Part shown: in pieces, positions 17,296-64,000 of the stretch
How the letters are laid out: each line of letters starts with the position of its first letter
Position numbering within the stretch: position 1 is the stretch's first letter
Assembly (NCBI RefSeq): GCF_902713615.1
Contig: NC_052147.1
Coordinates: forward strand, 166,574,410-166,638,409
DNA: 64,000 nucleotides
Reading direction: 5' to 3'
Source of the DNA: Scyliorhinus canicula
Taxonomy: Eukaryota
Notes under the pieces: generated by a model
The model's database searches: none
Told to the model about the DNA's origin: nothing
The model's input: the letters and a program-made list of their open reading frames with translations, nothing else
Position numbers and translations under genes: made by a program

Positions 17296-18195
17296 CTAGA
17301 AATCCCTCATGCGTCTGAAAGATCCGATAGTTGAGTTGTAGCCGCCCCAGTCACTGTATCTCTTGTATTCACCGGGTCTCATGAAGTACTGTCGGCCTCT
17401 GTAGTTGGGATGTTCATAGAAGTTCCAGTAACCGTCCATCACATGGCAGGAGTGGATGTCACGGTAACGGAAACGATCATAGACAGATGGACAGTCATCC
17501 ATGAATTCCATCATCTGTCCTCCAAAGTCAGGCCTCTCGTAAATCCTCATCTTGTAGTTTCCACCTCGGTACTGTAATAAAAATAAGATTACATTAATGA
17601 TTAAATAATAAATATACATTTGTTATACATAGGAAAAGAGAAACATTATGAAAGAAGGATTTAATGGAGCCCAGATGATGCATCAACAATGAGAGCAAAG
17701 CTGAGATAGTTTATTAACATTGATTCAATAGGTTGACTATCTTTGAAACTTGTTACAAAGAAGTAGCTCCTATCAAATGTTGAGCACACTGATCATTTTC
17801 TAAGGTTTAGAAATTGGACAGAAAATAAAAATCACCAAAAGCAACTTACATATGGGTAGGTGCGGCATGATCTGATGTTGTCATTGAATCCCATCCAGTG
17901 CTGGTAGTCAGGATATTCTCCCCTGCTCATAACATACTGGTATCCCATGTAATTGGGTTTCTCATACATCACCCACCAGTCACTCTCAACACGGACGGAG
18001 TTACAGCGGCTGAAGTAAGGGGACAGGTCAGCACAGTCACTGCTGCACTCATAGTGCCGACCCTGGAAGTTCCTGTCCTCGTAAAAGATGATCTGTGGAA
18101 AAAGTCACATGTTTCTAAATTAATAACTTGTCAAATTAGGCTATGAAGAATTCCAATTCAATATATAAACTCTGATTTATCCTTGCCTTCCCCAT
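17296..18195 (-). CDS. Gamma-crystallin G1 (shark gamma-S1-like), 175 aa; exons 18195-18187 (MGK), 18092-17850, 17571-17296
   Basis: [35 protein letters not shown]...[37 protein letters not shown]...FRRMRDF*; classic 9+243+276 nt gamma-crystallin exon structure, phase-0 introns, intron 1 GC-AG, intron 2 GT-AG; TATAAATA 18255-18262; AATAAA 17241-17246. Confidence 0.95.
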
Positions 18196-18254
18196 TTTGA
18201 GCTCAGAGTTTTAGCCGAGTAACTGACTATGCTTCACCACTTCACACAGTTTGG

Positions 18255-18356
18255 TATTTATATGTTGGACAGAATTGCCTCCCTGGACTGTACTTTTGTT
18301 ATTTTAATGATTGCAATAGTTTCAACTCAGCACAAAAGCAGCAAAACACATGTCAC
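18255..18356 (-). promoter_or_regulatory. G1 proximal promoter: TATA box, Sox-like AACAAA site, Maf half-site TGCTGAG
   Basis: TATAAATA 18255-18262; ATAACAAAAG ~18293-18302; TTTTGTGCTGAG (TGCTGAG 18326-18332); aligns with the G3/G4 promoter cores. Confidence 0.7.
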
Positions 18357-18840
18357 ATACACTAAATAGAACCATTTTAACGCACCTGTGTATCACTGAA
18401 TGTGTTTTGCCTCTGTCGCATTTTAATTGTTGTATAAAGATGGCAACAATGCATTGGAATCCATTGTGTTTCCGATACTGTACAGTGCTTTCACTGACAT
18501 TCCTGAAGAATTGGCATTACACATTCAACAGGTATGTTTCCAATAGTTCAGCCTCAGTGCTGAAGCTGACTGCAAAACCGATTACAATGCAGATGTACAT
18601 TTTCAGAATAATGTGCTTTATTTACAGCACTCTACATAATGGCTGATGCATAATTATCTGTGTTTTTTGCTTCCAGATTGTATTCCAAAGGTGATAGAAC
18701 CTTCAGCAATACATTTTAATTGTATGGGAATTAGATTTACATTAGATTTAGATTTATTGCCACGTGTATAGAGGTACAGTGAAAAGTATTGTTCTGAGTA
18801 CAGTCCAGGCACATCGCTCCATACATGAAAACATAGAACA

Positions 18841-19067
18841 GGCAGCACGTTGGCACAGTGATCAGCACAGATGTCTCATGGTGCCGAGGTCGCAGATTCG
18901 ATCCCGGTCCTGGGTCACTGTCTGTGTGGAGTTTGCACATTCTCCCCGTGATGGCGTGGTTTTAACCCCACAACCCAAAGATATGCCGGATAGGTGGTTT
19001 GACCATGTGAAATTGCCCCTTAATTGGAAAAAATTAATTGGGTACTCTAAATTTATTTTTAAAAATT
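18841..19067 (+). mobile_element. Short poly(A)-tailed HE1-like SINE, 13-bp TSD
   Basis: TSD AAAACATAGAACA (18828-18840) / AAAACATAAAACA (19068-19080). Confidence 0.85.
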
Positions 19068-19129
19068 AAAACATAAAACATACGATAAATGCATGATGTA
19101 AATACATAAACATAGACATCGGGTGATGC

Positions 19130-20095
19130 AATTTTAAAATTCATTGATAGGATGTGGGAGTCGCTGGTTAGGCCCGGATTTATTGCCCATCCTTAGTTGC
19201 TGGTGGGGAGTTGCCTTCTTGAACCGCTGCGGTACACCCATGTGTTGTTCGGGAGGGAGCTCCAGGATTTTGCCCCAGCGAAAGTGAAGGAATTCCAAGT
19301 CAGGTGGTGAGTTACTTGAAGGGGAACTTCCAGGTGGTGGGGTTCCCAGGTATCTGCTGCTCTTGTCCTTCTAGATAGTATTAGTCGTGGGTTTCGAAGT
19401 TGCTCTTTAAGGAACCCGGTGAGTTATTGCAGTGCATCTTGAAGATGGTTCACAGGGCTGCCACTGTTAGTCTGTGGTGGAGGGTTTGGCTGTGGTGGAA
19501 GGGGGAGCAATCAAGCGGGCTGCTTTGTCCTGGATGATGTTGATCTTCTTGCGTGTTGTTGGATCTTCACTCACCCAGGCAATTGGAGAGTATTCCATCA
19601 CACTCCTGACTTGTGCCTTGTAGATGGTGGACAGGCTTTGGGGGGTTCAGTCGGCAAGTTGTCCGCCGGTGGCTTCCTAGCCTTTGATCTGCTCTGGTTG
19701 CCACAGTATTCATATGGCTAGTCCAGTTCAGTTTCTGATCAATGGTAACCCCCAGGATGTTGATTGAGGGGGATGCAGCGATGGTAATGGCATTGAATGT
19801 TGAGGAGTGATGGTTAAATCCTCTCTTGTAGTAGATGTTCATTGCCTGGCACTTGTGTGGCACGAATGTAACTTGCCACTTGACTTGTCAACCCAAACCT
19901 GCATATTGTCCAGGTCTTGCTGCACTTGAACATGGCCTGCTTCATTATCTGAGGAGTCTCGAATTGTGCTGAACATTGTGCAGTGATCTGCAAACATCCC
20001 CACTTCTCACCTTATAATGAAAGGGAGGTCATTGATGAAGCAGCTGAAGATGGTTGGGGCTAGAACACTACCCTGAGGAATTACTGCAGTGATAC
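19130..20095 (-). mobile_element. Old CR1/L2-group LINE 3' fragment
   Basis: ORF 19567-19863 PHKCQAM..ILGVTIDQKLNWTSHMNTVATRA; degenerate GVVF*PQP..LHQ*P RT segment. Confidence 0.7.
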
Positions 20096-20837
20096 TCACT
20101 ATACGGAGTATAGTGCTACAACTACAGCAAATACAGATTTAGAAAGATCAGTTCAGTACATTAGAGGGCCATTCATGTATTTGATAACAGCGATAAAGAA
20201 GCTGTTTCTGAATCTATTGGTGCATGATATTATGGCTGCAGTGTTGAGGGGTGTTGTTTGTTACAGTCCAGACTCATTTTCATATTTTAACAAGTTCAGT
20301 TTACCTGAAGCCACATTAGAACAATAAACAGAACAGTAGAAAGTCAGGTGACAGAGTGATCAAAGGTATTTTTTAGAATGTTTGTTCTAAAGTGGGAAGC
20401 GAGGAGCTGGATTCTTAACCAAACAAAAATCAGTGAAGGAGGAAAGAGGCTCTGGGTGACTGAAACAGAACATAATTTTGACATAATGACAGATTCCGTT
20501 ACCAGAAGTGACATCCTCAAGCTCAGAAACAGCAATGCGACCGAGAGTTATTGAATCACAAAATGTGGATCATGGCTCATCCCACTCCACCTGCTGTGTT
20601 CTTTGAATGAGTTATCCAATTAGGGACAATCCTCCACAACTTTCCCATAGATTCCAACTTTTTCCTTTTCATCTATAAGTCAATAAAAGAAATCCAATGA
20701 TAAATAAAAAGATAAGTGACAATATTAAAATTAAGAAATTACATACAAAACTAGAATCAAAGCAATGATACGGGTGACTGGGAAAGATACAAGGAAAAGC
20801 AAAGGTGACAAACAGATGAGTTCAAAAAAATAAGTGT

Positions 20838-21000
20838 GGGGCAGCAGAGTGGCACAGTGGTTAGCATTGCTGCCTACGCCGCTGAGGACCTGGTTTCGAA
20901 TCCCGGCTCTGGGTCACTGTCCGTGAGGAGTTTGCACATTCTCCCCGTGTCTGCATGGGCTTCACTGCCATAACCCAAAAGATGTGCAGGATAGGTGGAT
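20838..21000 (+). mobile_element. HE1-like SINE truncated at the 5' end of the large CR1
   Basis: SINE head and core end abruptly at GATAGGTGGAT (21000); remainder not found after the CR1. Confidence 0.75.
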
Positions 21001-21290
21001 CGGTGGTGATAAGGAGCAGCAGCCTTCATATTTCCGCCGGGAGCAGTGGCGAGGGGTCTGTTGGGAAGGTAAGTTTACCTCTTTAAAACTTTAGAAACTT
21101 ACCTTGAAGAGTGTAGCAAAGCAGTGACCTGATTGGCTGGTAAGGAAAGTGCTCCAATTAGCAGCAGCTGGGAGAAATTTAACTCTTCCTGTGCTGGTGA
21201 GTATTGTGATTGGAAAGTAAAATCTTTATTCCTTTCACTTATTAATTATTTGATAGTATATTTTGTAGCCAGTTAAGGTAAAGGGTAAAA

Positions 21291-22238
21291 ATGGCAGGAG
21301 ATCCCAGACCCGTGTTATGCTCCTCGTGCTCAACGTGGGAGTTCAGGGACGCGGCCGATGCCCCTGACTCCTTCATTTCCGGAAAGTGTGTCCAGCTGCA
21401 ACTCCTGTTAGACCGCATGACGGCTCTGGAGCTGCGGATGGACTCACTTTGGAGCATCCGCGATGCTGAGGTGGTCGTGGATAGCACGTTCAGTGAGTTG
21501 GTCACACCGCAGATTAGGATTGGTGAGGGAGACAGGGAATGGGTGACTAAAAGGCAGAGAAAGAGCCGGAAGGTAGTGCAGGTGTCCCCTGCGGTCATCT
21601 CCCTCCAAAACAGGTATACCGTTTTGGATATTGTTGGGGGAGATAACTCACCAGGAGAAGGCAGTAGTAGCCAGGCTCATGGCACCGTGGCTGGCTCTGC
21701 TGTACAGAAGGGCGTGAAAAAGACTGGCAGGGCTATAGTTATAGGGGATTCAATTGTAAGGGGAGTAGACAGGCGTTTCTGTGGTCGAAAACGAGACTCC
21801 CGAATGGTATGTTGTCTCCCGGTTGCACGAGTCAGGGATGTCGCCGATCGGCTGCAGGACATACTGAAGGGGGAGGATGAACAGCCAGTTGTCGTGGTGC
21901 ATATAGGCACCAACGATATAGGTAAAAAACGGGTTGAGGTCTTACAATCAGAATTTAGGGAGTTAGGAGATAAGTTAAAAAGTAGGACCTCCAAGGTAGT
22001 AATCTCAGGATTCCTACCAGTGCCACGTGACAGTCAGATTAGAAATTCAAGAATAGTCAGAATGAATACGTGGCTTGAGAGATGGTGCAGGAGGGAGGGG
22101 TTCAGATATTTGGGACATTGGAACCGGTTCTGGGGGCGGTGGGAACATTACAAACCGGATGGTCTACACCTGGGCAGGACTAGAACCAATGTCCTAGGGG
22201 GTGCTTTTGCTAACACTGTTGGGGAGGTTTTAAACTAA
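21291..22238 (+). CDS. CR1 ORF1p (N-terminal Cys motif plus SGNH/GDSL esterase domain), open 315 aa
   Basis: CSSC...C; IVIGDSIVRG, VVVHIGTND, DGLHL catalytic blocks. Confidence 0.85.
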   Translation: MAGDPRPVLCSSCSTWEFRDAADAPDSFISGKCVQLQLLLDRMTALELRMDSLWSIRDAEVVVDSTFSELVTPQIRIGEGDREWVTKRQRKSRKVVQVSPAVISLQNRYTVLDIVGGDNSPGEGSSSQAHGTVAGSAVQKGVKKTGRAIVIGDSIVRGVDRRFCGRKRDSRMVCCLPVARVRDVADRLQDILKGEDEQPVVVVHIGTNDIGKKRVEVLQSEFRELGDKLKSRTSKVVISGFLPVPRDSQIRNSRIVRMNTWLERWCRREGFRYLGHWNRFWGRWEHYKPDGLHLGRTRTNVLGGAFANTVGEVLN

Positions 22239-22417
22239 TGTGGCAGGGGGATGGGAACCAGAATAGGAAGTTAGAGGTCAGTAAAGAGGCAGCAACTAAA
22301 GCCAGTAAGGTACTAGATAATAAACTCAATGTGACTAAGGGGAAGAGTAGACAGGGAAGAGATGATGAACACAAAGGGTCAGGAGGTCTGAGGTGCATTT
22401 GTTTTAATGCGAGAAGT

Positions 22418-23557
22418 TTGATAAGGTTCCCCACGGTCGGCTATTGCAGAAAATATGGAGGCTGGGGATTGAGGGTGATTTAGAGATGTGGATCAGAAAT
22501 TGGCTAGTTGAAAGAAGACAGAGAGTGGTAGTTGATGGGAAATGTTCAGAATGGAGTTCAGTTACAAGTGGCGTACCACAAGGATCTGTTCTGGGGCCGT
22601 TGCTGTTTGTCATTTTTATAAATGACCTAGAGGAGGGCGCAGAAGGATGGGTGAGTAAATTTGCAGACGACACTAAAGTTGGTGGAGTTGTAGACAGTGT
22701 GGAAGGATGTTGCAGGTTACAGAGGGACATAGATAAGCTGCAGAGCTGGGCTGAGAGGTGGCAAATGGAGTTTAATGTGGAGAAGTGTGAGGTGATTCAC
22801 TTTGGAAAGAATAACAGAAATGCGGAATATTTGGCTAATGGTAAAATTCTTGGTAGTGTGGATGAGCAGAGGGATCTCGGTGTCCATGTACATAGATCCC
22901 TGAAAGTTGCCACCCAGGTTGATAGGGTTGTGAAGAAGGCCTATGGTGTGTTGGCCTTTATTGGTAGAGGGATTGAGTTCCGGAGCCATGAGGTCATGTT
23001 GCAGTTGTACAAAACTCTAGGATGGCCGCATTTGGAGTATTGCGTACAGTTCTGGTCGCCTCATTATAGGAAGGACGTGGAAGCTTTGGAACGGGTGCAG
23101 AGGAGATTTACCAGGATGTTGCCTGGTATGGAGGGAAAATCTTATGAGGAAAGGCTGATGGACTTGAGGTTGTTTTCGTTAGAGAGAAGAAGGTTAAGAG
23201 GTGACTTAATAGAGGTATACAAAATGATCAGAGGGTTAGATAGTGTGGACAGCGAGAGCCTTCTCCCGCGGATGGAGGTGGCTAGCACGAGGGGACATAG
23301 CCTTAAATTGAGGGGTAATAGATATAGGACAGAGGTCAGAGGTGGGTTTTTTACGCAAAGAGTGGTGAGGCCGTGGAATGCCCTACCTGCAACAGTAGTG
23401 AACACGCCAACATTGAGGGCATTTAAAAATTTATTGGATAAGCATATGGATAAGGGCATAGTGTAGGTTAGATGGCCTTTAGATTTTTTCCATGTCGGTG
23501 CAACATCGAGGGCCGAAGGGCCTGTACTGCGCTGTATCGTTCTATGTTCTATGTTCT
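22418..23557 (+). mobile_element. 5'-truncated CR1 nested in the host endonuclease, TSD AAGT
   Basis: RT C-half ORF 22444-23466; (TTCTATG)n tail; AAGT at 22414-22417 and 23558-23561; host CFNARS|VAGKADEL restored on removal. Confidence 0.9.
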
Positions 23558-24110
23558 AAGTGTAGCAGGTAAGGCAGATGAACTTAGGGCTTGGATTAGT
23601 ACCTGGGAATATGATGTTATTGGTATTACTGAGACTTGGTTGAGGGAAGGGCAGGACTGGCAACTGAATATCCCAGGGTATAGATGCTTCAGGAGGGATA
23701 GAGAGGGAGGTAGAAGGGGTGGAGGAGTTGCATTACTAGTCAGAGATGATATCACCGCTGTGATTAAGGAGGACACTTTGGAGGATTCGAGCACTGAGGC
23801 AATATGAGTGGAGCTCAGAAATAGGAAGGGTGCAGTAACATTGTTAGGACTTTACTACAGGCCTCCCAAAAGCGAGCATGAAGTAGAGGTACAAATATGC
23901 AGACAGATTATAGAAAAATGTAAGAGCAATGGGGTGGTTGTGATGGGAGATTTTAACTTTCCCAACATTGAATGGGATTCGTGTAGTGTTGTAGGCGTAG
24001 ATGGAGCAGAGTTTGTAAGGAGCATCCAGGAGAGTTTTTTAGAGCAGTATGTAAATAGTCCAACTTGGGAAGGGGCCATACTGGACCTGGTGTTGGGGAA
24101 TGATCCCGGC

Positions 24111-26164
24111 CATAGAACATAGAACACTATAGCGCAGTACGGGCCCTTCGGCCCTCGATGTTGCGCCGACCTGTGAAACCATCTGAAGCCTATCTGACCT
24201 ACACTATTCCATTTTCATCCATATGTCTATCCAGTGACCACTTAAATGCCCTTAAAGTTGGCGAGTCTACTACTATTGCAGGCAGGGCGTTCCACACCCC
24301 TACTACTCTGAGTAAAGAAACTGCCTCTGACATCTGTCCTATATCTATCACCCCTCAATTTAAAGCTATGTCCCCTCGTGTTGGTCATCACCATCCGAGG
24401 AAAAAGACTCTCACTGTCCACCCTATCTAACCCTCTGACTATCTTATATGTCTCTATTAAGTCACCTCTCAGCCTTCTCCTCTCTAACGAAAACAACCTC
24501 AATTCCCTGAGCCTTTCCTCGTAAGACCTTCCCTCTATACCAGGCAACATCCTAGTAAATCTCCTCTGAACCCTTTCCAAAGCTTCCACATCCTTCCTAT
24601 AATGTGGTGACCAGAACTGCACGCAGTACTCCAGGTGCGGCCGCACCAGAGTTATGTTCAGCTGCAGCATGACCTTGTGGTTCCGAAACTCAATCCCCCT
24701 GCTTATAAAGGCTAGCACACCACCTGCCTTCTTAACAGCCCTATTAACCTGGGTTGCAACTTTCAGGGATTTATGTACCTGGATGCCGAGATCTCTCTGT
24801 TCATCTACACTACCAAGAATCTTGCCATTAGCCCAGTAATCTGCATTCCTGGTACTCCTTCCAAAGTGAACCACCTCACACTTTTCCGCATTAAACTCCA
24901 TCTGCCACCTCTCAGCCCAGCTCTGCAGCTTATCTATGTCCCTCTGTATCCTATAACATCCTTCAGCACTATCTACAACTCCACCGACCTTCGTGTCATC
25001 TGCAAATTTACTAACCCATCCTTCTACACCCTCTTCCAGGTCATTTATAAAAATGACAAACAGCAGTGGCCCCAAAACAGATCCTTGCGGTACACCACTA
25101 GTAACTGAACTCCAGGATGAACATTTGCCATCAACCACCACCCTCTGTCTTCTTTCAGCTAGCCAATTACTGATCCAAACCGCTAAATCACCTTCAATTC
25201 CATACTTCCTTATTTTCTGCAATAGCCTACCGTGGGGAACCTTATCAAACGCCTTACTGAAGTCCATATACACCACATCAACAGCTTTACCCTGATCCAC
25301 CTGTTTGGTCACCTTCTCAAAAAACTCAATAAGGTTTGTGAGACATGACCTACCCTTCACAAAACCGTGTTGAGTATCGCTGATCAACTTGTTCTTTTCA
25401 AGATGATTATAAACCCTATCTCTTATAACCTTTTCCAACATTTTACCCACAACCAAAGTAAGGCTCACAGGTCTATAATTACCAGGGTTGTCTCTACTCC
25501 CCTTCTTGAACAAGGGGACAACATTTGCTATCCTCCAGTCTTCCGGCACTATTCCTGTCGACAAAGACGACATAAAGATCAAGGACAAAGGCTCTGCAAT
25601 CTCCTCCCTGGCTTCCCAGAGAATCCTAGGATAAATCCCATCTGGCCCAGGGGACTTATCTATTTTGACATTTTCTAAAATTGCTAACACCTCCTCCTTT
25701 TGAACCTCAATTCCATCTAGCCTGGTCGACTGAACCTGAGTGTTCTCCTCGACAACATTGTCTTTCTCCAGTGTAAACACGGACGAAAAATATCCATTTA
25801 ATGCTTCCCCTATCTCCTCTGATTCCACACACAATTTTCCACTACTATCCTTGATTGGCCCTAATCTTACTCTAGTCATTCTTTTGTTCCTGATATACCT
25901 ATAGAAAGCCTTAGGGTTTTCCTTGATCCTATCCGCCAACGACTTTTCGTGTCCTCTCCTCGCTCTTCTTAACTCTCCCTTTAGGTCCTTCCTGGCTAAC
26001 TTGTAACTCTCAAGTGCCCTAACTGAGCCTTCATGTCTCATCCTAACATAAGCCTTCTTCTTCCTCTTGACAAGTGCTTCAACATCCTTAGTAAACCACG
26101 GTTCCCTTGCTCGACAACTTCCTCCCTGCCTGACAGGTACATACTTATCAAGGACACGCAGTAG
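24111..26164 (-). mobile_element. 5'-truncated CR1 (same young family as 7633-11900), nested
   Basis: ORF 24242-26224 nearly identical to 8186-10177; tail CATAGAACATAGAAC at 24111. Confidence 0.92.
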
Positions 26165-37303: not shown

Positions 37304-37579
37304 TACCGAGGCGGAAACTACAGAATGAGGATTTACGAGAGGCCTGACTTTGGTGGACAAATGATGGAATTCATGGATGACTGTCCATCCGTCTATGATC
37401 GTTTCCGTTACCGTGACATCCACTCCTGCCATGTGATGGACGGTTACTGGACCTTCTATGAACATCCCAACTACAGAGGCCGACAGTACTTCATGAGACC
37501 CGGTGAATACAAGAGATACAATGACTGGGGCGGCTTCAACTCAACTATCGGATCTTTCAGGCGCATGAGAGATTTCTAA
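37304..37579 (+). pseudogene. Gamma-crystallin G2: orphan exon 3 (open frame); exons 1-2 not found in the window
   Basis: TATCACAG acceptor, [16 protein letters not shown]...FRRMRDF*, AATAAA at ~37629; 11/276 nt differences from G3 exon 3; no [11 protein letters not shown] exon seen upstream on +. Confidence 0.75.
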
Positions 37580-46625: not shown

Positions 46626-46819
46626 AATTTGGAGAATCTAGCCCCATTCCTGTTTATTTACAGCGACTACATACATGTTGGGACCTCTGAACGAGGTTGG
46701 AATTTTTGCTCCCTCACGATCTCTGTTACTCAATCATGTGATGTTACATCGTCATTACTTCAGCATTATGCACTTCTGATATGCTTCTCTTTACCCCACA
46801 TTAATCTGCATGATTTTAT

Positions 46820-47910
46820 CGAATCATAGAATGATTATAGCACAGGAATTGGCCATTTGGCCTGTCATGTCCGTGCCTACTCTCTCCATGAGCAACTCAC
46901 CGAGTCACACTCCGCTGCCCTTTCCTGTCACCCAGCAAATTAGTTTTCACTTCAAATAGTTATCTAATTCCCTTTGAAAGCTTTGATTGAAACTGCTTCC
47001 ACCACACTCTCAGATAGAATATTCCAGGCCTTAACCACTTGCTGTGTGAAAACCTTTTTTCCCCTGTTGCTGTTATTTTTCACCAATCACCTTTAATCAG
47101 TGTCCACTGCTTCTGCTGCCAATGAAAAAAAAGGTTGACTAGACTTCTTATGATCATGAACACTGCCTTCAAATCTCTGCTTAATCGTCCCTTCACCAAG
47201 GAGAACATTCCCCATCTGTACACGTGGCTGAAGTTTTTCATCCCTGGAAACATGCTGGCGAATCTTTTTTGAAACCTCTGATGCCTTCACATTTTGTCCA
47301 AAGAATGGTGACCAGAATTCGACACAATACTTCGACTGAGGACAAAGCAGGCTCATCATAATTTCCGTGTTTTTATACTCAGTGCTCCTAATTATAAAGC
47401 CAAGGAACTCGTATGCTTTAGAAACTGCTTTCTTAACCTGCCCTGCCATCTTCAATGATTTGTACACATGCACCCCAGATCCCTCTTCCCCTGCCCACTC
47501 CTATGCTTGATTGTTTATTGCATCTCCCTGTTCTTCCAACCATAATGAATCACTTCATACTTTTCGGCATTAAATTACATCTGCCATATACTCACCCATT
47601 CAATTGGCCTGACTAAGGTCATTTAAAGTTATACACGATCCTTCTCATGGCTCACAATTCGCAAATTTTGTGTTATCTGTAAATTTTTAAATTGTGCCCT
47701 GCACAGTGAAGCTAAGGTCATTAATATTGATCAGGATAAGCAGTTGCCCTAACTCTGTGCCCTGGGGAACCCCATCATATCTTATTCCTGTGTGACAAAG
47801 ATCGCCACTATTCTGTCTCTTACTGCTCAGTCAACATTGTGCTCCTTTGACCACTGTCCCTTTCATTCCATGGCCCTCATTTGCTGACAAGTTTGTTATG
47901 TGCTACTTTA
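46820..47910 (-). mobile_element. Old CR1 fragment upstream of G3
   Basis: ORF 47093-47473 VYKSLKMAGQVKKAVSKAYEFLGFI..YCVEFWSP. Confidence 0.7.
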
Positions 47911-48194
47911 TCAATGAAAACTCCAAACAATAAAAAAATAACATTGCAGATGGAGTCTGAAAGTACAGAAGTAATAGATATGACAATGAGCAAAGCAATT
48001 AGTGTGGGTTTTTCTTCTTCACGTTGGTTAATTTAGGAACTGAGCTGGCTGGGTATACTTTGGGAATAGGTTCTAGGAAATAGATTTTGTAACCATTGCT
48101 GTTTTGAAACAGTTTGAATGTAGAAAGCACGATGGACTCTCCCTCTTTGTTTTGACACGACAAATAAAATGAAACTAAAGCAAAGTGAAGAGAA

Positions 48195-48320
48195 TCAGTG
48201 ACATGTCAAGCAACATGTCAAGTGATGTGTTTTGTTCTCTTTTTGCTGATGTTCAGCATCAAATCATATGAATAACAAAGGAACAGAGTAGAGAGCATTT
48301 TGTACAGCATATATATATCA
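48195..48320 (+). promoter_or_regulatory. G3 proximal promoter: ACATGTCAAG tandem, palindromic MARE-like TGCTGA-TGT-TCAGCA, Sox site AACAAAG, TATA
   Basis: 48201-48222; 48244-48258; 48274-48280; TATATATA ~48310-48317. Confidence 0.7.
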
Positions 48321-48376
48321 CACTGTACAATGTGTTGCTCTGTTAAAGCAGTTACTCATCTAACTGTGAGCTCAAA

Positions 48377-50264
48377 ATGGCAAAGGCAAGAATCAAATTG
48401 TTTTTTTCTCAGGATTTAAGAGTTCTTGATTACTGTCGCTAGATTTTCAGTTTATTAATTTATCTTGTCTTTTTCCACAGATTATCTTTTACGAGGACAG
48501 GAACTTCCAGGGTCGGCACTATGAGTGCAGCAGTGACTGTGCTGACCTGTCCTCTTACTTCAGCCGCTGTAACTCCATGCGTGTCATGAGTGACTGGTGG
48601 GTGATGTATGAGAAACCCAATTACATGGGATACCAGTATGTTCTGAGCAGGGGAGAATATCCTGACTACCAGCGCTGGATGGGATTCAATGACAGCATCG
48701 GCTCATGTCGCACCTACCCATATGTAAGTTTGTTGTTTACACATTCTGCTCTGATTGACATCAAATTGACTCACTGAGTGGATGAATTCTAGAGTCATTT
48801 AAATTCAATACACATTTCGATTTGAAAAAGCTTATTGAATTGGAGGTTTAGAATGTTGATTTAGACTGTGAATCTGTTGGATTTAATTTTTCATGCAAGT
48901 TGTTATTGTTACATAGTGGGCTGTTTACTTATTCTAACTTGTTGTGATATTTCAAGGCCAGTTTTCTGATGAAATACCTCAGTTTCAGTGTGAGCATAGC
49001 ATCGAGACACTTAGTCCCACTTTATATTGCAACAAAAATACATAAAAGTGTGTTCAGACAGACATCATGTGCTCAATAATAATTCACAGCATTAGACTTC
49101 TAGTCAAATTATTCTATTGTTTATGTTGCCCTCACACATTCTTCCCATTTCCCATAAACATATAATGGTGAGGAAGTTAATATGTTCCAGACAATCACAG
49201 ACATTGCTGAGTAAATGGTTCCCAGTCCACCAGCCCATTATCTGTGACAATGTCCTTACCTCAAGCACATTTATACAATGCATTACTGCTCAGCAGAACG
49301 ATGGGGTGGGCGTTTTCGGCTATGCCCTCCCAGCGACTGGAAATTCCCGTCCAAGGTCAACAGACCTTTACATCGTCCTAGTCCCGTCCATGGCGATCTT
49401 GCAGCGGGTATGGCCAAAAACCTTGGGGCTATAACTTCCTGGCTCCACAGCATAGAATGTGAGGAGTTTGCCAAAGATATGCTGGGGAATTCTTCTCAGA
49501 TGTCCACAGCTTTGTGTGGCAATTGTGCAGAAGTCCGAACATTCCCCAGACAATTGAGTTGGAAATCGCCTAACAAAATTTTAAAGTTACTAACTTTGGA
49601 TGGATCTGCCAGTTTTACATCAATAACTACCTGACTGGACCCAACCTGCTCCCTCCTCCCTGCCCACCCCACCCAGGAGCTTACCCAACCTAACTTGATC
49701 CAACCACCCCTCCACCACCCCACCACCGCCCCAACCCTTCCCCCGCGGTGGAGGAGAACCGCCCCCACCTCCTGGGGTTCACCAGAAACCCCAACATCCC
49801 TGGAGTGGATTTGATCCACCTTGTCCTCCCTCCCACCGCCCCACCTTTTCCGAAACTTTGCTTAATCCTCATTGGTAATGAGATGATACTTCAGGTATTC
49901 CCTTCACACCTACCAGCTCCATTTCTATGCCTATATCAAATATATAATTCATGCTATCGTCACAAATATGCTTTTCCTTCTATCACAGTACCGAGGTGGA
50001 AACTACAAAATGAGGATTTACGAGAGGCCTGACTTTGGAGGACAGATGATGGAATTCATGGATGACTGTCCATCTGTCTATGATCGTTTCCGTTACCGTG
50101 ACATCCACTCCAGCCATGTGATGGACGGTTACTGGACCTTCTATGAACATCCCAACTACAGAGGCCGACAGTACTTCATGAGACCCGGTGAATACAGGAG
50201 ATACAGTGACTGGGGCGGCTTCAACTCAACTATCGGATCTTTCAGACGCATGAGGGATTTCTAG
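48377..50264 (+). CDS. Gamma-crystallin G3 (shark gamma-S1-like), 175 aa; exons 48377-48385 (MAK), 48481-48723, 49989-50264
   Basis: Open frame across three exons; intron 1 GC-AG (95 nt), intron 2 GTAAGT...TCACAG (1265 nt); AATAAA 50314-50319. Confidence 0.95.
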
Positions 50265-50702
50265 ATTGTTCCTGACAAATATGGCTTTGTTTTTCAGACA
50301 AAAGTGTCAGCAGAATAAATATACATAACTTAACTGCTTTTTCTCGCAATTTGTGTTTGGATTGAGTGGGAAGAATACCTGGCACAATTGTTTCAAAATA
50401 TCTTCAGGATGATAAAAGGCAAATTTGGGCGAATGTGTGATGACTTCCCATTATACACCCTGCCTAACTTTCCATTGATGCTGAATTGAAGTTGAGAATG
50501 GCATGCTAATTATCTCTACGATGATGACGATTAGATAATCCAATTTCATGATCACGCAAAACTAATCTCTATGCCACTTCTCTAGGAGCAGGCAGAAGTT
50601 CAGTTCCTTATGATTACTGAGTCTAAAATATGGAAGTCAGAAGAAACATCGGTTAAATAAATAACAGTCGATGGCTGTGCCCTTCTGGATTTGTGTTTAA
50701 TC

Positions 50703-50880
50703 TGGGGCTGGTTTAGCACAGGGCTAAAGAGCTGGCTTTTAAAGCAGACCAAGGCAGGCCAGCAGCACGGTTCAATTCCCGTACTGGCATCCCCAAACAG
50801 GTGCTGGAATGTGGTGACTAGGGGCTTTCACAGTAACTTCATTTGAAGCCTACTTGTGACAATAAGCGATTTTCATTTTT
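50703..50880 (+). mobile_element. tRNA-derived SINE
   Basis: GGGGCTGGTTTAGCACAGGGCTA head, GGTTCAATTCC, tail CACAGTAACTTCATTTGAAGCCTACTTGTGACAATAAG; absent from the paralogous G2 flank. Confidence 0.75.
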
Positions 50881-54545: not shown

Positions 54546-54605
54546 CTGCTCTGGATATCAGCCTGGATTGTTGCGTCTGAGTCTTAGATTGGGACTTAAA
54601 CTCAT

Positions 54606-54841
54606 TTTTTGTTTCTTTTTTAAAAAAAATTTAGATTACCCAATTATTTTTTCCAATTAAGGGGCAATTTAGCGTAGCCAATCCACCTACTCTGCACATT
54701 TTTGGGTTGTGAGGGCGAAACCCACGCAGACACGGGGAGAATGTGTAAACTCCACACAGACAGTGACCCAGAGCCGGGATCGAACCTGGGACCTCAGCGC
54801 CGTGAGGCGGTTGTGCTAACCACTAGGCCACCGTGCTGCCC
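54606..54841 (-). mobile_element. Short poly(A)-tailed HE1-like SINE, perfect 16-bp TSD
   Basis: TGGGACTTAAACTCAT at 54590-54605 and 54842-54857. Confidence 0.9.
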
Positions 54842-55915: not shown

Positions 55916-56457
55916 GGGCGCGATTCTCCCAAAACGGGAGAAATCGTAAAGCTGCAGTTTGGAAGATTCTAACCCGCGCGTGCGCGGGTGACGTCATCGC
56001 GTTTTGCGCGAAACCCGCGCATGCGCGGGCCGGGTTGCCCCTCAGCCGCCCCGCGAATGGATACTGCGGGGCGGCGGAAGGACAAGTAGTGCACGGGCAT
56101 CGGGCCCGCTGCCCGCGATCGGTGCCCACCGATCGCGGGCCCATGGCACCCTTGGCACGGCCGTGCCAATCGGTGCCATGGTTATTAATAGCGAGTTTGT
56201 GACGCCGTTTTTACGAACGGCAAGACCAGGTGTGTTTGCCGTTCGTAAAAACGGCGGAAAGGGCTGGGACTTCGGCCCATCTAACAGCTGAGAATCGCTG
56301 CCGGCCGTAAAAAAACGGCGGCAGCGATTCGGGTCGGGACTTCGGCGGGGGGGGGGGGGGGGGGGGGGGGGGGGGAGAATAGCGGGAGGGCGGCAAAAAT
56401 GTCGGGAAGGCCCTCCCGCTATTCTCCCACCCGTCGTGGGGGCGGAGAATTTCGCCC
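55916..56457. mobile_element. Young CpG-rich Harbinger-type MITE, 3-bp TSD AGT
   Basis: TIRs GGGCGCGATTCTCC / GGAGAATTTCGCCC; AGT at 55913-55915 and 56458-56460. Confidence 0.8.
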
Positions 56458-58070
56458 AGTGTACCAACAGCCATCTTTCTTTTTTCTTTCATGGAATGTG
56501 GGCATTACAGGCATCATTTATTGTCCACCCAAATTGCTTTTGAAGTGAATGGCTTGTTTGACCATTTCAGAGGGCATTTAAAAGACAACCATATTGTTGT
56601 GGGTCTGGAGCCATATGTAGGTAAGGATGGCAGATTTGCTGCCGTAAAGGACATTAGCGAACCAGATGAGATTTCACAGCAATTAACAATGGTTTCATGG
56701 TTATTATCAGACCCTTATTTCCGGATTTCCTTTTGAGATGATCTTGGTGTGACAGGAATACCTGATCCAAGTGGAAAGCATGCCCAGCAGGAAGAGCAGA
56801 GTGCCGCCAGGGTGCTTTAAAAATGTCTGCGAATCTAAATTACATGTAGCTCACAGACAGAAAGAGAAAATAACAAGGCCAAATCAAATCCATGAAGTGG
56901 AAAAGCCACAGATAAAACAAATAATCTTCAGAGGAGAAGTTAAATAGTTGAAAATAATTATCGGAGCATTAAATTGAAAGTTGATGGTCATCCCACAGAA
57001 TTCAAACCAACTACATCTTGGTGCTGGTGATCCGGTATTACCTGATAGAGTAAATTGGCTTAAAATGATCATGTTACTGCCATTCTGCATCCAGTTGCAA
57101 GGCTGGGGAGGGGCTACACTAAATGCAACAGGCAAGATTAAGAGATAAGGGGTGCGATCTACTGTCCACGTTGCGCCCGAACAGGATCGCGACGCAGCCG
57201 GTAGATGCTTCCAGGAGAGACCTCTCCAGGCTTCCCGACAGTTGTTGCGCATTGCGAGATCTAACCAGATCTCATGAGATGTCGCAATCTGGATCCCACC
57301 TATGACGGATGAGTCCAATCTTACAGGGTGAAGTTGGCTTATAAGATGACTTTCCACTCCATTCACAGGATCGAGCAGCCACCCAGAATCTACTGGCCTC
57401 ACCGAGGAGACCCAGCCGGGCGCCGTTCAGCACTGGTCCCCACAAACGGGGACCAGGTGGAATTGTACCTGGGGGCTCCCAGACAATCGGAGACTCCCCG
57501 GTGTTTTATTTTGGTTAGATCGCGTCCAAGGATAAAGCAATTATGGAACCCCTGTATATTACACAGAACTGAGATTCATCATTATTGAACAGAAAAACAT
57601 GCTTAAGTTGTAGATAATTGATGAAATTGTTGAAGCGCTGCCCAGTAATGTATGGGAAATGAATTCCCACCCCTATTTTAAGGCTCAAGAAAGCTGAAGA
57701 TAGAATATCACATACCAGTAAGGATAGATGCCTATATGTCTCTTCATCGTGAGGATAATCCCCACCCACTCTTGGACAGAGTCAAGGGCGAATTGTTATA
57801 TCTCTCCAGAAACCATACTGAAAAAGGGTGCTCTGGAATGGTCACAGTACCAAAGGCTAATGACTCAATAAGAATTTGTGTGGAGATAGCCAATTAAATT
57901 ACAGTGGAGCACAAGATCCACCCAATGGCATCAGTGGGTGAAGGTCTCGCCAACTTAGCTAAAAATCACCTTTTTCACAAAATTGGATACGGACAGTGTT
58001 AATTGCCTCTGGACAAATAATCAACGTAGCTAACAACTCTTGCCCCCCCCCAATTGGTTGTTATTGTTTT

Positions 58071-58295
58071 TTAAAATAAATTTACAGTACACAATTATTA
58101 TTTTTTTCCAATTAAGGTGCAATTTAACATGGCCAATCCACCTAACCTGCATATTTTTGGGTTGTGGGGGCGAAACCCACGCAGACATGGGGAGAATGTG
58201 CAAACTCCACATGGACAGTGACCCAGGGCTGGGATTCAAATCCAGGTCCTCAGCGCCGCAGTCCCAGTGCTATCCACTGCGCCACCGTGCTTCCC
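58071..58295 (-). mobile_element. Short poly(A)-tailed HE1-like SINE, 16-bp TSD
   Basis: TGGTTGTTATTGTTTT (58055-58070) / TGGTTGTCATTGTTTT (58296-58311); TT/AAAA site on minus strand. Confidence 0.85.
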
Positions 58296-58364
58296 TGGTT
58301 GTCATTGTTTTAATAAGTTACCATTCGGAAATGCTTCTGCTTCCGTAATATTTCAAAGAACGAT

Positions 58365-58546
58365 GGGGTGAATTCCTTGTCTCCCCAGCCATGTGTTCCT
58401 CGGTGGCGTGCTGTCACCAGCAGCGGAACTCTCCATTCCTGCAGTCAGTCAACGAGATTTCCCATTGTGACCACACTGTGTCGCCGGGAAACCTGTAGGG
58501 AAGCTGCTGGCAGAATGGAGAAACCTGTCAGTGGAGAAATCACCCC
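58365..58546. mobile_element. Harbinger-type MITE, TSD GAT
   Basis: GGGGTGAATTCC / GGAGAAATCACCCC; removal restores Gypsy FQRTMS. Confidence 0.75.
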
Positions 58547-58619
58547 GATGTCTTAGACGCTGAAAGGCATAGAAGAAGTAATATGCCATTTGGACGCTTA
58601 TCCTGTACATGGTCAATCA

Positions 58620-59180
58620 AATGTCGAGTCATACAGCACAGAAAAGGCCCTCTGTTTGTCGCATCTGCACCTGTCAGAAACAACCATCTATCTAACCCCA
58701 TTTTCCAGCACTTGGCCCATAGCCTTATATGCCTTGGGATCGACAATGCACATCTAAATACTTAAATGTCATGAGGGTCTTTGTCTCTGCCATCCTTTCA
58801 GGCAGTAAGTTCCGAACCTCCTGCCCCTGCCCTTAAATCAATGTCCCCTGGCCATTGATCCCTCCACCAAGGGAAAAAGCTTATTCTTGTCTACTCTATC
58901 TGTGCCCTTCATAATTTTATACATCTCCATCATATAGCCTGTAGGTCTCTTCTGCTCCAAGGAAAATAACCCAAGTCGAGCCAACATTTTTTCATAACTA
59001 AAACTCTCCAGCCCAGGCAACTACCTGGTAAATCTCCTCTGCACCCTTTCCAGTGCGATCACATCCCTCCTATAATTTGCATTCCAGAACTGCACACAAT
59101 ACACTAGCTGTGGCCTAACCAATGTTTTATGCAGTTCCAGCATAAACTCTCTGCGCTTGAACTCTATGCCTGTGAGGGCA
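58620..59180 (-). mobile_element. Old CR1 3' fragment
   Basis: GIEFKRREFMLELHKTLVRPQLVYCVQFW; LGLFSLEQKR. Confidence 0.75.
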
Positions 59181-60184
59181 AACTTTAAGGTTCCACAAGA
59201 AACAGATTTGACATTGAATGACAAACATGAATTTATGACGGGCATGATAACATTCTTCAGGCATTGTGCAGGATTTGGGAAGTTGTGCTAACCCGCAGAA
59301 AAGCTAGGTGATTAGAGTATTTGCAGTCTAGAAACCAGCATAAAATTACAAAGACTCCTTGGATAGTCAATCAAATCTTGGGTTGCTCTTTTTCACCTAA
59401 AGAAAATTGCAAAAAATAACACCGACTATTCTCATGAGATATGATTCAGTTGTCGAATATGTTGAAGGGAAGTGCGAGACAACATTAGATGCACTGTCGA
59501 GATTACCAGTGGAAGGAGTCAAAGTGGAAGATATACATTTATTAAGGAAGTGGAAGTATATACTTTCCTCATTGCCAAACACTTGCCAGCTGCTGAGTTT
59601 ACAAGATATTAAGTAAGCACAACAACAGAATTACAAAAGCATCTAAATAAAAGGGTATTGACAGAACAGATGCCTGGATTATATTCCAAATAACCCAGAA
59701 TTTTGCCAATTCTCAGGATGTAGAAAAAAACATCTCACAATCATGGATAATTCCTTTGTTTTTAACCTCTAAAACACTTTGATTTGACAGCCTGCAGACA
59801 ATCCACCAAAATCACTTGGCAATAGTGAAATGCTGAGTAAGACCCAATAATAATTTGAGTGGCCAGCCATCAGTCACCCCATTCTCAAATTGCCATACAT
59901 GTGCAATGAATAGTTAACAGTAGAGCGAACAACTGGCACCCTCCACTTTTTCTTCGAGGACATAGCAGTTCTTGGGAATGGATTTATTGAGTTTCAAAGG
60001 CAAAGTTTTCACCATTTCTGTTAATTATTATTCTAGATGGTTTGAAGTGAGTAGACGAAACATCATCTTGATGGAGGCAGTCACTAAGAAGAAACTTTGC
60101 ACACATGTCATGCTAGATGTTGTGGTCAGACAATGGTCCTGACTTCGCTAATGATTTGTTCCACAACTTTGCACAGGAATATGT

Positions 60185-61250
60185 GGCTGGATTCTCCGTT
60201 TCAGCGGCTAAGAGTAAGCCTCGATCATAAAACCAGGGACGGGATTCTCCGTTGCCCAACGCCAATATCGTAATCGATGATAGGGCATAGAATCCCTTCA
60301 AATGTTCAAATCGGGGGCGGCACTGGTTTGATGCCGGTTTTCAAGTTTCTGCCCCCCTTGGAAATGACATAATTGCGATGAACGCCGTTGAAACAGCATG
60401 CTCCGTCCCTGATGGGCTGAGTTTCCAGACCGCGCAGTTGACATATGGTCTGAGTGGTTGGGAACCAGGTCAAAATCAGCGCCGAAACCTCAGCGATTCC
60501 GGAATGGTGAGGGTCTAGCAGCAGCAGCTCCCATGCCAAAAATGGCCGGAGATTGACAGGGTCCGTGGCCGTGCATGCACACGGCTGACAACCTGCAGCG
60601 TGTGGTGATCCAACCACTGTATATATGTGTGCTTGCAGTAGGGGGATGTATGACCGTACCTGTATTACAGGTTTCTCCGGTAAGCCCCTGCCGACTAGCT
60701 CCGTCCACAGGGAGCTGTATAAATATTCGTAAGTTTCACTGAGATGCCATTCTACAGCTGCCGCCGGAGGAATAGCATCTCACTGTAATAAAGCCTCTCT
60801 TGTACATCACTCGGGTCTCTGTGTGCAATTGTTAGCGCCACACAACGGTCGGCGTACAACATGCGACCCCACAAGCCACCTCCTGGCCACTCATTGGCCG
60901 CTCTCCACCAGACCCCCCAGCCCTCGTGGAAGCAACTCTTCCCGGCCAGTAGCACGGATCCTGGCCGAGTGTGGTAGCGCTGGACACAGTCCGCAGCTGC
61001 CACACCGGGTTCCTGACTGCTCAGACCACATGTTAACCGAGCGGTCGGGAACTTGGCCCATCAGGGACGGAGCATCACCAGAGGGGCTTCCGATGACGCG
61101 CCAATGCCGTTTCAATGGCGTGTGGTGCATGATGTGATGATGCCATTTCAGACGGGGCGGAGACTTGAAAACCGGCGCCGCCCCCGATTTGAACATCTGA
61201 AGGGAATCACCGATTACAATCTCGGCTTCGGGCAACGGGGAATCCCGCCC
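60185..61250. mobile_element. Long-inverted-repeat (foldback) Harbinger-type element with an internal solo LTR (~60618-60842)
   Basis: ~240-bp imperfect inverted arms 60237-60470 / 61005-61250; internal TG-start segment with TATAAA and AATAAA. Confidence 0.7.
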
Positions 61251-61795
61251 CTGGTTTTATGCACAGGGCGTGTTAGTTAAAAGGGTTTTCAAACAATCAA
61301 GGAATTGATGGAAAAAGAATGAAGATATTAACTTAAATCTTAACAACAGAACCACCCCATTAAAAATGGGTTCTCATGATCAGAACTGGTGAGCTGTTGG
61401 CTGAAAACACAACTTCCAGCTCTACAGCAAATACTAAAACCTAACATTACCTCAAATGATCACGAGAATCAGGAAGTGTGAGGAGCAACAAAGAGACAGT
61501 CAAACTCTGGATTTCAACTTCAGGCACAAAGCACAACACCTTCCGCATGTTCCCCGCTGAGGCTTCTCATAAAACATAGTCAACTGTTTCTTACAAAACA
61601 CGGGCTAAGCATGCTCGCTACGAGACTTTGTTCCCAAATGGTTGAATCGAGCCCCACTAGTCCAAACTATCGCATTCTGGTAGCAGCACTTCCATTGTGT
61701 GCAAGCACCATGTGTGCCCATGTGCTGCATACTGGAATCATCAGCAGATAGAGCTTGTTGCCTAGTAACCACCCTCTGTTTTGACCTGAGTTTTC

Positions 61796-61886
61796 AGAGT
61801 AAGAAGTCTGACAACACCAGGTTAAAGTCGAACATGGTTGTTTCAAACACTAGCTTTCGGAGCACTGCTCCTTCCTCGGGTGAATG
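61796..61886 (-). mobile_element. Penelope-like element terminal fragment with a degenerate hammerhead motif
   Basis: Minus strand CCGAGGA-A-GGAGC-AGT-GCTCC-GAAA-GCTAG followed by ..CTTTAACCTGGTGTTGTCAGACTTCTTAC. Confidence 0.55.
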
Positions 61887-61948
61887 AGTTTTCAGATGCA
61901 GCTGTCACAGCGGACGGCTGAAGGGTGAAGACATCATGACATTTGTTA

Positions 61949-62295
61949 GGACAGTACGGTAGCACAGTGGTTAGCACAGTTGCTTGACAGCTCCAGGGTT
62001 CCAGGTTCCATTCCTCGCTTGCGTCACTGTCTGTGCGGAGTCTGCACGTTCTCCCCGTGTGTGCGTGGGTTTCCTCCGGGTGCTCAGGTTTCCTCTCACA
62101 GTCCAAAGATGTGCAGGCTAGGTGGATTGGCCATGCTAAATTGCTCTTAGTGTCCGATAAGGTGAGGTAGGGTTACTGGGTTACTGGGTTACGGGGATAG
62201 GGTGGAGGTGTGGACTTAAGTGGGGTGCTCTTTCCAAGAGCTGGTGCAGACTCGATGGGCCAAATGGTCTCCTTCTGCACTGTAAGTTCTATGAC
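61949..62295 (+). mobile_element. Full HE1-like SINE with CR1-type tail
   Basis: Head, core and GATGGGCCAAATGG.CTCCTTCTGCACTGTAAGTTCTATG tail. Confidence 0.85.
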
Positions 62296-63489
62296 ATCAG
62301 ACATCAACCAACATAATTTCATGGAACCATTAAACAATTCCAGCTCTTGAACCAGCAAGTCATGTTATGAGCGCGTTCACCCTTCAAGAGCAACACTCCA
62401 AGTTCCTCTTTGCTTCATTTTTCACTACTGCTCCAATCGTCCAATTCCCTTGGAAAATCTCAGAGTGGAGCATTCCAGATCATTTATTCTTAATGCCCTT
62501 GTTTAGAAAAGCCTCAGAACACAAACTGCTTTAGTCACCACCTACATAACCTGCCCTCCCACCTACAATGATGTGTGCCAATACACCACCGGGTACATCT
62601 GCTCATGCAGATACCCCTGTGATTAGTATCCTATATTTTATGTGGCCTCTTTATATTCTTTTGACCAAAATCAATCGCTTCACACTGCTTTCGATTAATT
62701 TTCATTGTGTTTGCCCATTCCAGCCTGCCTCGGGCCATTTGAAGTTGAACACTATGCTTCTCATAGTTCGGCACCATGGTCAAGCTCATTAACATATATT
62801 AAGAATATCCAAAACTAAACATCGCAGCGAACACCGCTATATATCTTCCCACAGTGTTTCACAGAACTGTTCGCCAACACTCTGTCTCCTTCACCCATGG
62901 GTTTCAAATTTGCTAAAAGTTTGGTTCTATATCAATGAAAATTATGAACAATATAAGACCATAAGTATAGAAGCAGAGTTAGGCCACTCGGACCATCGGG
63001 TCATCTCTGCCATTCAATTATGGCTGATATTTTTCTCAGACCCATTCTCCTGCCTTCTCCCCATATCCCCTGATCCCCTTATTAATCAAGAGCCTATCTA
63101 TCCCTGTCTTAAAGATAAAATTGGAGATGGATTCTTAAAATATAACAATACTGGTTGGTGCACCTGTACATTGCCAGCTAAACTACTCCACCATCATTCA
63201 CATGCATCATCACATTGATGTCAACTTATGTGAAAATGGACAAAAACAGAGCAACAAATCCATTTACCGTTGTACTGTCACTGCTAGTAGTTACGCCAAG
63301 GAGCAAAAACACATTTTAGTTAATTTAGCAACCGAGCTACCTGGATATATGTTGGAAAGAAATTATTGAAAATTGATTTTGTAACCATTGCTGTTTGAAA
63401 ACAATTTGAATGTAGAAAAAACAATAGACTCGCCCTCTTTGTTTTCACACGACAAATAAAATGAAACGAAAGCAAAGTGAAGAGAATCA

Positions 63490-63615
63490 GTGACATGTCA
63501 AGCAACATGTCAAGTGATGTGTTTTGTTCTCTTTTTGCTGATGCTCAGCATCAGATCATATGAATAACAAAGGAACAGAGTAGAGAGGTCATTTTGTACA
63601 GCGTATATATATCAC
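63490..63615 (+). promoter_or_regulatory. G4 proximal promoter (near-identical to G3)
   Basis: TGCTGA-TGC-TCAGCA 63536-63550; AACAAAG 63566-63572; TATATATA 63604-63611. Confidence 0.7.
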
Positions 63616-63670
63616 ACTGTAGAACGTGTTGCTATGTTAAAGCAGTTACTCATCTAACTGTGAGCTCAAA

Positions 63671-64000
63671 ATGGCAAAGGCAAGAATCATGCTGTTATCT
63701 CTACACTTTGTGCTTACTATCACTAGATTTTCAAGCTTATTAATTTATCTTCTTCGTAGCCTAGTTTGACAAGTTATTAATTTAAAAACCTGTGACTTTT
63801 TCCACAGATTATCTTTTACGAGGACAGGAACTTCCAGGGTCGGCACTATGAATGCAGTAATGACTGTGCTGACCTGTCCCCTTACTTCAGTCGCTGTAAC
63901 TCCATGCGAGTCATGAGTGACTGGTGGGTAATGTATGAGAGACCCAATTACATGGGATACCAGTATGCTCTGAGCAGGGGAGAATATCCTGACTACCAGC
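63671..64000 (+). CDS. Gamma-crystallin G4, partial: exon 1 63671-63679 (MAK), exon 2 63808->64000
   Basis: [64 protein letters not shown] open to window end; intron 1 GC-AG (128 nt). Confidence 0.92.

Follow-up and report, generated by a model that had tools for sequence, protein, structure and literature searches.

A stretch of 64,000 nucleotides (nt) from the catshark Scyliorhinus canicula (contig NC_052147.1, positions 166,574,410 to 166,638,409 of the forward strand; hereafter the window) contains part of a gamma-crystallin gene cluster, and in three of its genes, named G1, G3 and G4, the first intron starts with GC instead of GT. The gene G1 is encoded on the minus strand. Its TATA box TATAAATA (18255..18262) is situated about 60 nt 5' of the ATG and aligns with the TATAAATA of all elasmobranch paralogues. 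The coding part of exon 1, as read from the sequence, comprises the nine letters ATGGGGAAG for Met-Gly-Lys (18187..18195) and is followed by a putative phase-0 intron 1 of 94 nt, which according to sequence and alignment would extend from GCAAGG to TTTTTCCACAG with GC-AG ends (18093..18186). Exon 2 (17850..18092) has 81 codons, encodes the first beta/gamma-crystallin domain (Pfam PF00030, E 2.6e-30) and ends at the donor TAT/GTAAGT (here and below a slash within letters marks the exon/intron or exon/exon border), and exon 3 (17296..17571) adds the second crystallin domain (PF00030, E 1.1e-34) and the stop codon. G3 shows the same arrangement on the plus strand, with a TATA-like box TATATATAT (48310..48318) recognized by sequence and alignment, the exon 1 coding part ATGGCAAAG for Met-Ala-Lys (48377..48385), a phase-0 GC-AG intron 1 of 95 nt from GCAAGA to TTTTTCCACAG (48386..48480), an exon 2 of 81 codons with the donor TAT/GTAAGT (48481..48723; PF00030, E 4.2e-31) and an exon 3 with stop codon (49989..50264; PF00030, E 4e-34). 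G4, also on the plus strand, has a TATA-like box at 63604..63612 (sequence and alignment), the exon 1 coding part ATGGCAAAG for Met-Ala-Lys as read from the sequence (63671..63679), a predicted GC-AG intron 1 of 128 nt from GCAAGA to TTTTTCCACAG (63680..63807) and the first 64 codons of exon 2 (63808..64000; PF00030, E 1.2e-24); the window contains no exon 3 of this gene. An initial reading made from the letters alone (the sequence-only reading) had counted three intact genes, which has to be restricted, because exon 2 of G4 runs off the window end and the intactness of this gene is therefore not seen.

A tblastn search of the window with the exon-2 peptide returned three copies of exon 2 (18092-17850 on the minus strand, 48481-48723 and 63808-63999), and the same search gave three copies of exon 3 (at about 17544, 37334 and 50019). 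One of the latter represents G2, an orphan exon 3 with an open frame on the plus strand (37334-37561); neither an exon 2 nor an exon-1 motif was found upstream of it by tblastn and pattern search of the window. The products of G1 and G3 are open frames of 175 residues each, with two beta/gamma-crystallin domains, one per large exon (PF00030, E 1e-30 to 1e-34). They are 86-96% identical to shark proteins named gamma-crystallin S-1-like, and the best protein matches of the window products come from Scyliorhinus torazame (95-96% identity), followed by other sharks (86-92%). The canonical vertebrate gamma-crystallin gene has three exons, a 9-nt coding exon 1, a phase-0 intron 1 of about 100 nt and one two-motif domain per exon. 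G1, G3 and G4 resemble it in layout, phase, intron size and TATA promoter, and an arrangement of three exons, with nine coding letters in exon 1 and introns in phase 0, was also found in 23 genes of eight other species. However, G3 and G4 differ from it by an exon 1 that encodes MAK, hence, the MGK micro-exon assumed for all three genes is correct for G1 only. Moreover, the three window genes and four other elasmobranch genes carry a GC donor at intron 1, whereas the fetched mammal, gar, paddlefish, tarpon and chimaera genes combine the same layout with GT donors in 15 of 15 cases.

Re-reading of the sequence confirmed AAG/GCAAG behind the 9-nt exon 1 in all three genes, including the coordinates reported before. 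The border reads ATGGGGAAG/GCAAGG from 18186 on the minus strand in G1, ATGGCAAAG/GCAAGA from 48386 in G3 and ATGGCAAAG/GCAAGA from 63680 in G4. At their 3' ends, the three introns share a polypyrimidine tract and the strong AG acceptor CTTTTTCCACAG, which abuts exon 2 (ATC or ATT followed by ATC TTT TAC GAG...) at its first positions 18092 (G1), 48481 (G3) and 63808 (G4); intron 2 begins with a canonical donor in both G1 and G3. None of the GTs that the three introns contain is at the same time in frame, consensus-like and common to all, and none of them occurs as an RNA joint. The possibility of a U12-type GC-AG intron was ruled out, since the donor is GCAAG and not GCATCC and a TCCTTAAC-like branch site is missing; the U12-type motifs [AG][TC]ATCC and TCCTTRA do not occur in the three introns, and U12-type GC-AG introns of the minor spliceosome share only the terminal dinucleotides with them. 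Judged by these motifs, intron 1 of G1, G3 and G4 appears to be an ordinary U2-type GC-AG intron that would be removed by the major spliceosome. In human and mouse, about 0.8% of all introns and 1.2% of first introns are of the GC-AG type (PMC7242645, PMC1557818), thus, the presence of such introns in three of three genes exceeds chance, although the paralogues are not independent of each other.

The use of the GC donor was evaluated with contigs of four RNA runs from the same organism (X1, X2, X3 and X5), which were placed on the G3 locus (46800-50700). Contigs of X1, X3 and X5, which belong to three different studies, contain a joint 48383->48479 with two ambiguous letters. This joint can be placed in three ways, with the intron ends AG..AC, GG..CA or GC..AG, and only the placement 48385/48481 gives G at position +1 together with an AG acceptor. 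Hence, the joint is equivalent to 48385/48481, the sole GC..AG placement, i.e. the junction that had been predicted. G3 and G4 have the same 26 letters in front of the joint, so that the joint proves a functional GC donor for one of the two genes or for both, and GC-AG is consequently used at the junction in mRNA of a G3/G4-type transcript. The RNA depth starts in the bin 48241-48371, in front of the coding part of G3 exon 1; no depth exists 5' of this bin in X1, X3 and X5, which excludes an upstream exon, and in X2, the run without the intron-1 joint, this region has trace depth only. A competing GT joint at intron 1 does not occur in the RNA contigs on the G3 locus, and the intron 2 joint 48723/49989 with GT..AG ends is present in X2, X3 and X5. 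For G1, the use of the corresponding junction is to be expected from homology.

Other joints of X1 at 48386 carry extra letters (TC, TCAC and others). Their interpretation as alternative splicing of G3 was rejected, because these letters are not found in the G3 locus; they derive from paralogous mRNAs (MAK-V-I/T-FY..., where the slash separates alternative residues) having the 5' end of G3. These mRNAs, which continue with GTC ATC... or GTC ACC..., contain the last 25 nt of the 5' untranslated region and exon 1 of G3 and represent highly expressed paralogues outside the window, with a contig depth of 16,700-21,600 in X1 compared to about 100 for the G3/G4-type joint. A loose contig end, ...ATGGGAA running into 48479 onward, belongs to an MGK-II paralogue. 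On exons 2 and 3, X1 reaches word depths above one million, a level that a lens-rich library would give, although the words concerned are common to the paralogues.

The sequence-only reading had suggested that the GC donor might serve the control of splicing or intron retention. For the bin 48372-48502, X1 gives a mean depth of 207,646; about 284,000 would be predicted from the 22 letters of exon 2 in this bin alone, given their depth of about 1.7 million. In X5, a depth of 1,153 was observed for the bin holding intron 1, compared to about 1,330 expected from the exon letters. The exonic letters therefore account for the complete bin depth and intron 1 adds nothing measurable, which leaves the proposed retention control without support. 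Intron 2 is represented in X1 by one contig of 1,310 nt at depth 72, compared to 1.2-1.8 million on the exons. Another X1 contig (depth 113) matches through GCAAG to 48390 and resumes at 48472, which shows that a related copy is represented in traces, either by unspliced RNA or by DNA. An intron-containing transcript that makes up a substantial share, as characteristic of a retained or 'detained' intron, was not found in these contigs. Large retention of intron 1 is excluded, and small retention is compatible with the data, given that contig depths are crude.

The surroundings of the GC are as close to the consensus as had been assumed. All seven GC donors identified in this study have the context AAG/G.AAG (AAG/GCAAG), compared to seven of the 19 GT donors (p = 0.006), and the permissive AAG/GTAAG exists in five of the 15 non-elasmobranch genes. 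Such a compensating consensus in the rest of the donor is a documented property of GC-AG introns (PMC1557818). The pairing with the 5' end of U1 was predicted to reach -4.8 and -5.3 kcal/mol for the GC donors, and about -9.5 and -10.0 kcal/mol when the same sites were recomputed with T at +2. Among the GT donors of the family, several span predicted U1 duplex energies from -5.4 to -6.8 kcal/mol, including the working donors of Rhincodon 6560 (-5.8), Megalops 15883 (-5.6), Polyodon 5550 (-6.5) and G3 intron 2 (-5.4). By this prediction, the GC donors equal GT donors that are in use, among them the intron 2 donor of the very same gene, and the designation 'weak' given to them earlier would be a relative one.

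The taxonomic distribution of the GC donor was analyzed by scanning fetched loci for exon 2 and then upstream for ATG-NNN-NNN/G[TC] behind a TATA box. The resulting table comprises 26 intron-1 donors of nine species, with 2 to 4 genes per species, and is without coelacanth, amphibian and a second catshark. Besides the catshark window (AAG/GCAAGG, AAG/GCAAGA and AAG/GCAAGA; GC in 3 of 3), GC donors were found in the thorny skate Amblyraja radiata (locus L002; AAG/GCAAGT at 11187, next to AAG/GTAAGG at 21011; 1 of 2), the whale shark Rhincodon typus (L003; AAG/GCAAGA at 11698, next to GTTGAG at 6560 and GTAAGA at 18858; 1 of 3) and the sawfish Pristis pectinata (L004; AAG/GCAAGA at 12434 and AAG/GCAAGG at 23511, next to AAA/GTAAGG at 3721; 2 of 3). 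All donors were GT in the chimaera Callorhinchus milii (L001; GTAAGT, GTAAGA, GTAAAA, GTAGGT; 0 of 4), the gar Lepisosteus (L005; GTAAGA, GTAAGC; 0 of 2), the paddlefish Polyodon (L006; GTGAGG, GTAACT, GTAAGG, GTAACT; 0 of 4), the tarpon Megalops (L007; GTAAGA, GTACCT, GTAAAG; 0 of 3) and a mammalian locus found via an Ovis aries protein (L008; GTGAGC twice; 0 of 2). Thus, seven of the 11 elasmobranch genes have GC, compared to none of the 15 others (Fisher p = 5e-4, which is descriptive only since the genes are not independent). The GC donor is common to sharks and batoids; it is neither the general state of fish gamma-crystallin genes, as the sequence-only reading had considered possible, nor unique to the catshark genome. 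The idea of a lineage marker is supported in this form, but the term 'cluster-wide' does not apply, because GT paralogues adjoin GC ones in whale shark, skate and sawfish. One further gar gene (L005:10013) was left out of the table, because no exon 1 was found. Its annotated product (L005:10001-10255) starts from an in-frame ATG 12 nt before exon 2 (MTLK/IIFYE), and no ATG-NNN-AAG/GT micro-exon with TATA box was found upstream within the locus; exon 1 of this gene is either lost or replaced, or situated farther away.

Trees of coding and non-coding parts give different pictures of the donor history. In the tree of exons 2 and 3, the genes group by species (Polyodon, Lepisosteus, Callorhinchus and catshark), which we read as the signature of exon-restricted gene conversion. 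Such conversion means that the coding tree tells little about how the intron evolved, hence, it was rejected for this purpose because of concerted evolution, and a tree built from the promoter and intron 1, without the six letters of the donor, was used instead. In the latter tree, six GC genes and the GT gene Rhincodon 18858 form one group (support 91/91), and Pristis 12434 (GC) is placed just outside. The GC label needs two changes on this tree compared to 4.9 expected under shuffling, with 4 of 500 shuffles as low, and the starred branches force only one change; a single GC clade is not rejected (approximately unbiased (AU) test, p = 0.068). In this regard, the promoters of G1, Rhincodon 11698, Pristis 23511 and Amblyraja 11187 show extended similarity, which suggests orthology of these genes. 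The branches of the subtree that contains all GC genes add up to about 3 substitutions per site, for which a neutral C/T site is expected to switch about once, and one to two switches are seen (a rough estimate from branch lengths). The number of switches is about the neutral one and gives no evidence for selection holding the C, i.e. the selective retention implied by the sequence-only reading was not substantiated.

Some further observations concern the evolution and the promoters of the cluster. The intron 1 of G4 (63680-63807, 128 nt) is chimeric; its first approximately 70 nt align with the G3 intron up to TTATTAATTTATCTT, and its last approximately 55 nt (TTCGTAGCCTAGTTTGACAAGTTATTAATTTAAAAACCTGTGAC...) match the 3' half of the G1 intron, which suggests conversion or unequal exchange between two intron types. 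In paddlefish, gar, chimaera and catshark (window and L001-L008), coding exons group by species and promoters and introns do not, so that exon-restricted concerted evolution seems to be general in vertebrate gamma-crystallin clusters. The elasmobranch promoters (18255-18330, 48255-48320 and 63545-63615 in the window; L002-L004) contain an invariant GCTGA block, and most of them have a AATAACAAAG/AACAAAAG block 20-50 nt upstream of TATAAATA. These blocks resemble the Maf half-site (TGCTGA) and the SOX site (AACAAAG) of mammalian gamma-crystallin promoters.

Taken together, we consider it probable that intron 1 is an ordinary U2-type GC-AG intron which originated from an old, roughly neutral T-to-C change and was spread by tandem duplication. 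Splicing would cut the pre-mRNA at AAG/GCAAG behind the 9-nt micro-exon, to which exon 2 would be joined in phase 0. One base pair with U1 would be lost through the C at +2, and the complete match to the consensus at positions -3 to -1 and +3 to +5 would make up for this loss; we propose that the intron is thereby removed efficiently without special regulation. In the most likely course of events, the GC state arose once, by a T-to-C transition in an early elasmobranch gamma-crystallin gene before the split of sharks and batoids. Tandem duplications and gene conversion would have distributed it within the cluster, where it would then have drifted roughly neutrally with occasional reversion to GT, corresponding to one or two reversions or conversions. 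Several points weigh against this explanation. The RNA joint was seen at the G3 locus and is extended to G1 by homology; contigs cannot quantify splicing efficiency, so that modest retention would escape notice; and the gene clusters are much larger than the few genes sampled per species. Furthermore, the coding tree rejects a single GC clade (AU p = 0.0002), and the value of 0.068 for the non-coding tree is borderline, thus, two independent gains or a spread by gene conversion are compatible with it.

The latter possibility needs closer consideration. Switching between GT-AG and GC-AG is frequent among vertebrate orthologues (PMC1557818), and a T-to-C change at +2 would be tolerated given AAG/G.AAG, a permissive context that already exists in seven of the 19 GT donors. 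Gene conversion in the cluster is strong, as indicated by the coding tree with its grouping by species and the G3/G1 chimera in G4 intron 1, and the non-coding tree needs at least two changes with Pristis 12434 outside the main GC group. It could therefore be argued that GC was gained repeatedly, or was distributed by gene conversion between paralogues in each lineage. However, frequent gains should also show up outside elasmobranchs, where GC is absent despite the five genes with AAG/GTAAG. Moreover, the GC genes cluster on the non-coding tree, with one clade not rejected, and the shared promoter similarity of one gene each from catshark, whale shark, sawfish and skate points to orthologous genes, which makes repeated gain, or such copying within each lineage, unlikely in our view. 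A simple error, either in assembly or sequencing or in the assignment of the first exon, with ATG-NNN-AAG/GC not being a splice site, can practically be dismissed, because GC is present in three separate window copies and at the homologous site of four genes in the assemblies of three other species, the depth-113 contig of X1 follows the genome through GCAAG to 48390, and the spliced joint occurs in three runs that have no RNA upstream.

The GC donor could also have been selected as a regulatory device, in that a sub-optimal 5' splice site of the first intron would tune the splicing rate, retention or promoter-proximal U1 effects and thereby determine how much these very highly expressed lens genes produce. 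In favor of such a function, GC has been kept in shark and batoid genes whose intron interiors diverged beyond easy alignment, and within the window it has persisted despite the strong divergence between G1 and G3/G4 in the promoter and in the first half of the intron. GC-AG introns have further been reported to be enriched among first introns, and a regulatory role was proposed for them (PMC7242645). Nevertheless, neighbouring GT paralogues in the same clusters encode similar proteins, the very deep and presumably lens-rich library X1 gives no sign of intron 1 retention, the predicted U1 pairing is no weaker than that of GT donors used elsewhere in the family, and the number of switches roughly agrees with that of a neutral site. 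Hence, we regard a regulatory device as very unlikely. The chances are slightly lower still that selection maintains GC in a single gamma-crystallin subfamily of elasmobranchs as a splicing brake or timer; if true, GC and GT paralogues would differ in processing rate or timing during lens-fibre differentiation, and the splice site would encode a level of dosage control among tandemly arranged genes.

The preferred explanation as an ordinary, roughly neutral GC-AG intron is in line with what is known about such introns. The window introns share with known U2-type GC-AG introns (Sheth et al. 2006, PMC1557818; Abou Alezz et al. 2020, PMC7242645) the GC..AG ends, the fit of the other donor positions to the U1 consensus (AAG/GCAAG), the short length, the position as first intron and the alternation of GT and GC among homologues, and no mechanistic difference was found for the window genes. 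In general, GC-AG introns are shorter than GT-AG introns (PMC1557818, PMC7242645). Full-text searches of the literature returned no relevant report that pairs crystallin or gamma-crystallin with GC-AG. The novelty concerns the location only, namely a lens gene family amplified in tandem, where duplication has multiplied the variant and where sharks and batoids have it in common.

The finding has consequences for gene annotation. The expectation that gene predictors will miss exon 1 was verified for several public protein models. In the model P0008 of Scyliorhinus torazame, ...IIFYED is preceded by residues that result from translation of the 3' end of intron 1 of the G3 type, P0025 from a GC gene of Amblyraja reads the tail of intron 1 into the protein (MAAAYLFPQ/IIFYED), and P0036 from a GC gene of Pristis contains 48 unrelated residues in place of exon 1. 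Two other models contain the MGK/MAK-IIFY junction. P0023 of Rhincodon (L003:10001-13729, RefSeq-type, 217 amino acids; ...ELKMGK/IIFYED) is correct across the GC-AG intron and over-extended upstream, where the TATA box and the 5' untranslated region are translated (...TYKYQAVGDIETFSYEANCELK) before MGK. P0002 of S. torazame begins with MAKIIFYED and fuses exon 2 of two genes. Several public elasmobranch models thus replace MGK or MAK by translated intron or spurious upstream exons, and GC-AG should be accepted at intron 1 when lens genes of sharks and rays are curated.

Collectively, the GC donor points to no new splicing mechanism, and there is no evidence of a regulatory role. Its value for the gene family is that of a simple derived character, which is found in sharks and batoids and is absent from the sampled chimaera and bony-vertebrate genes, and which may help to sort the paralogues in a cluster whose exons have been scrambled by gene conversion.

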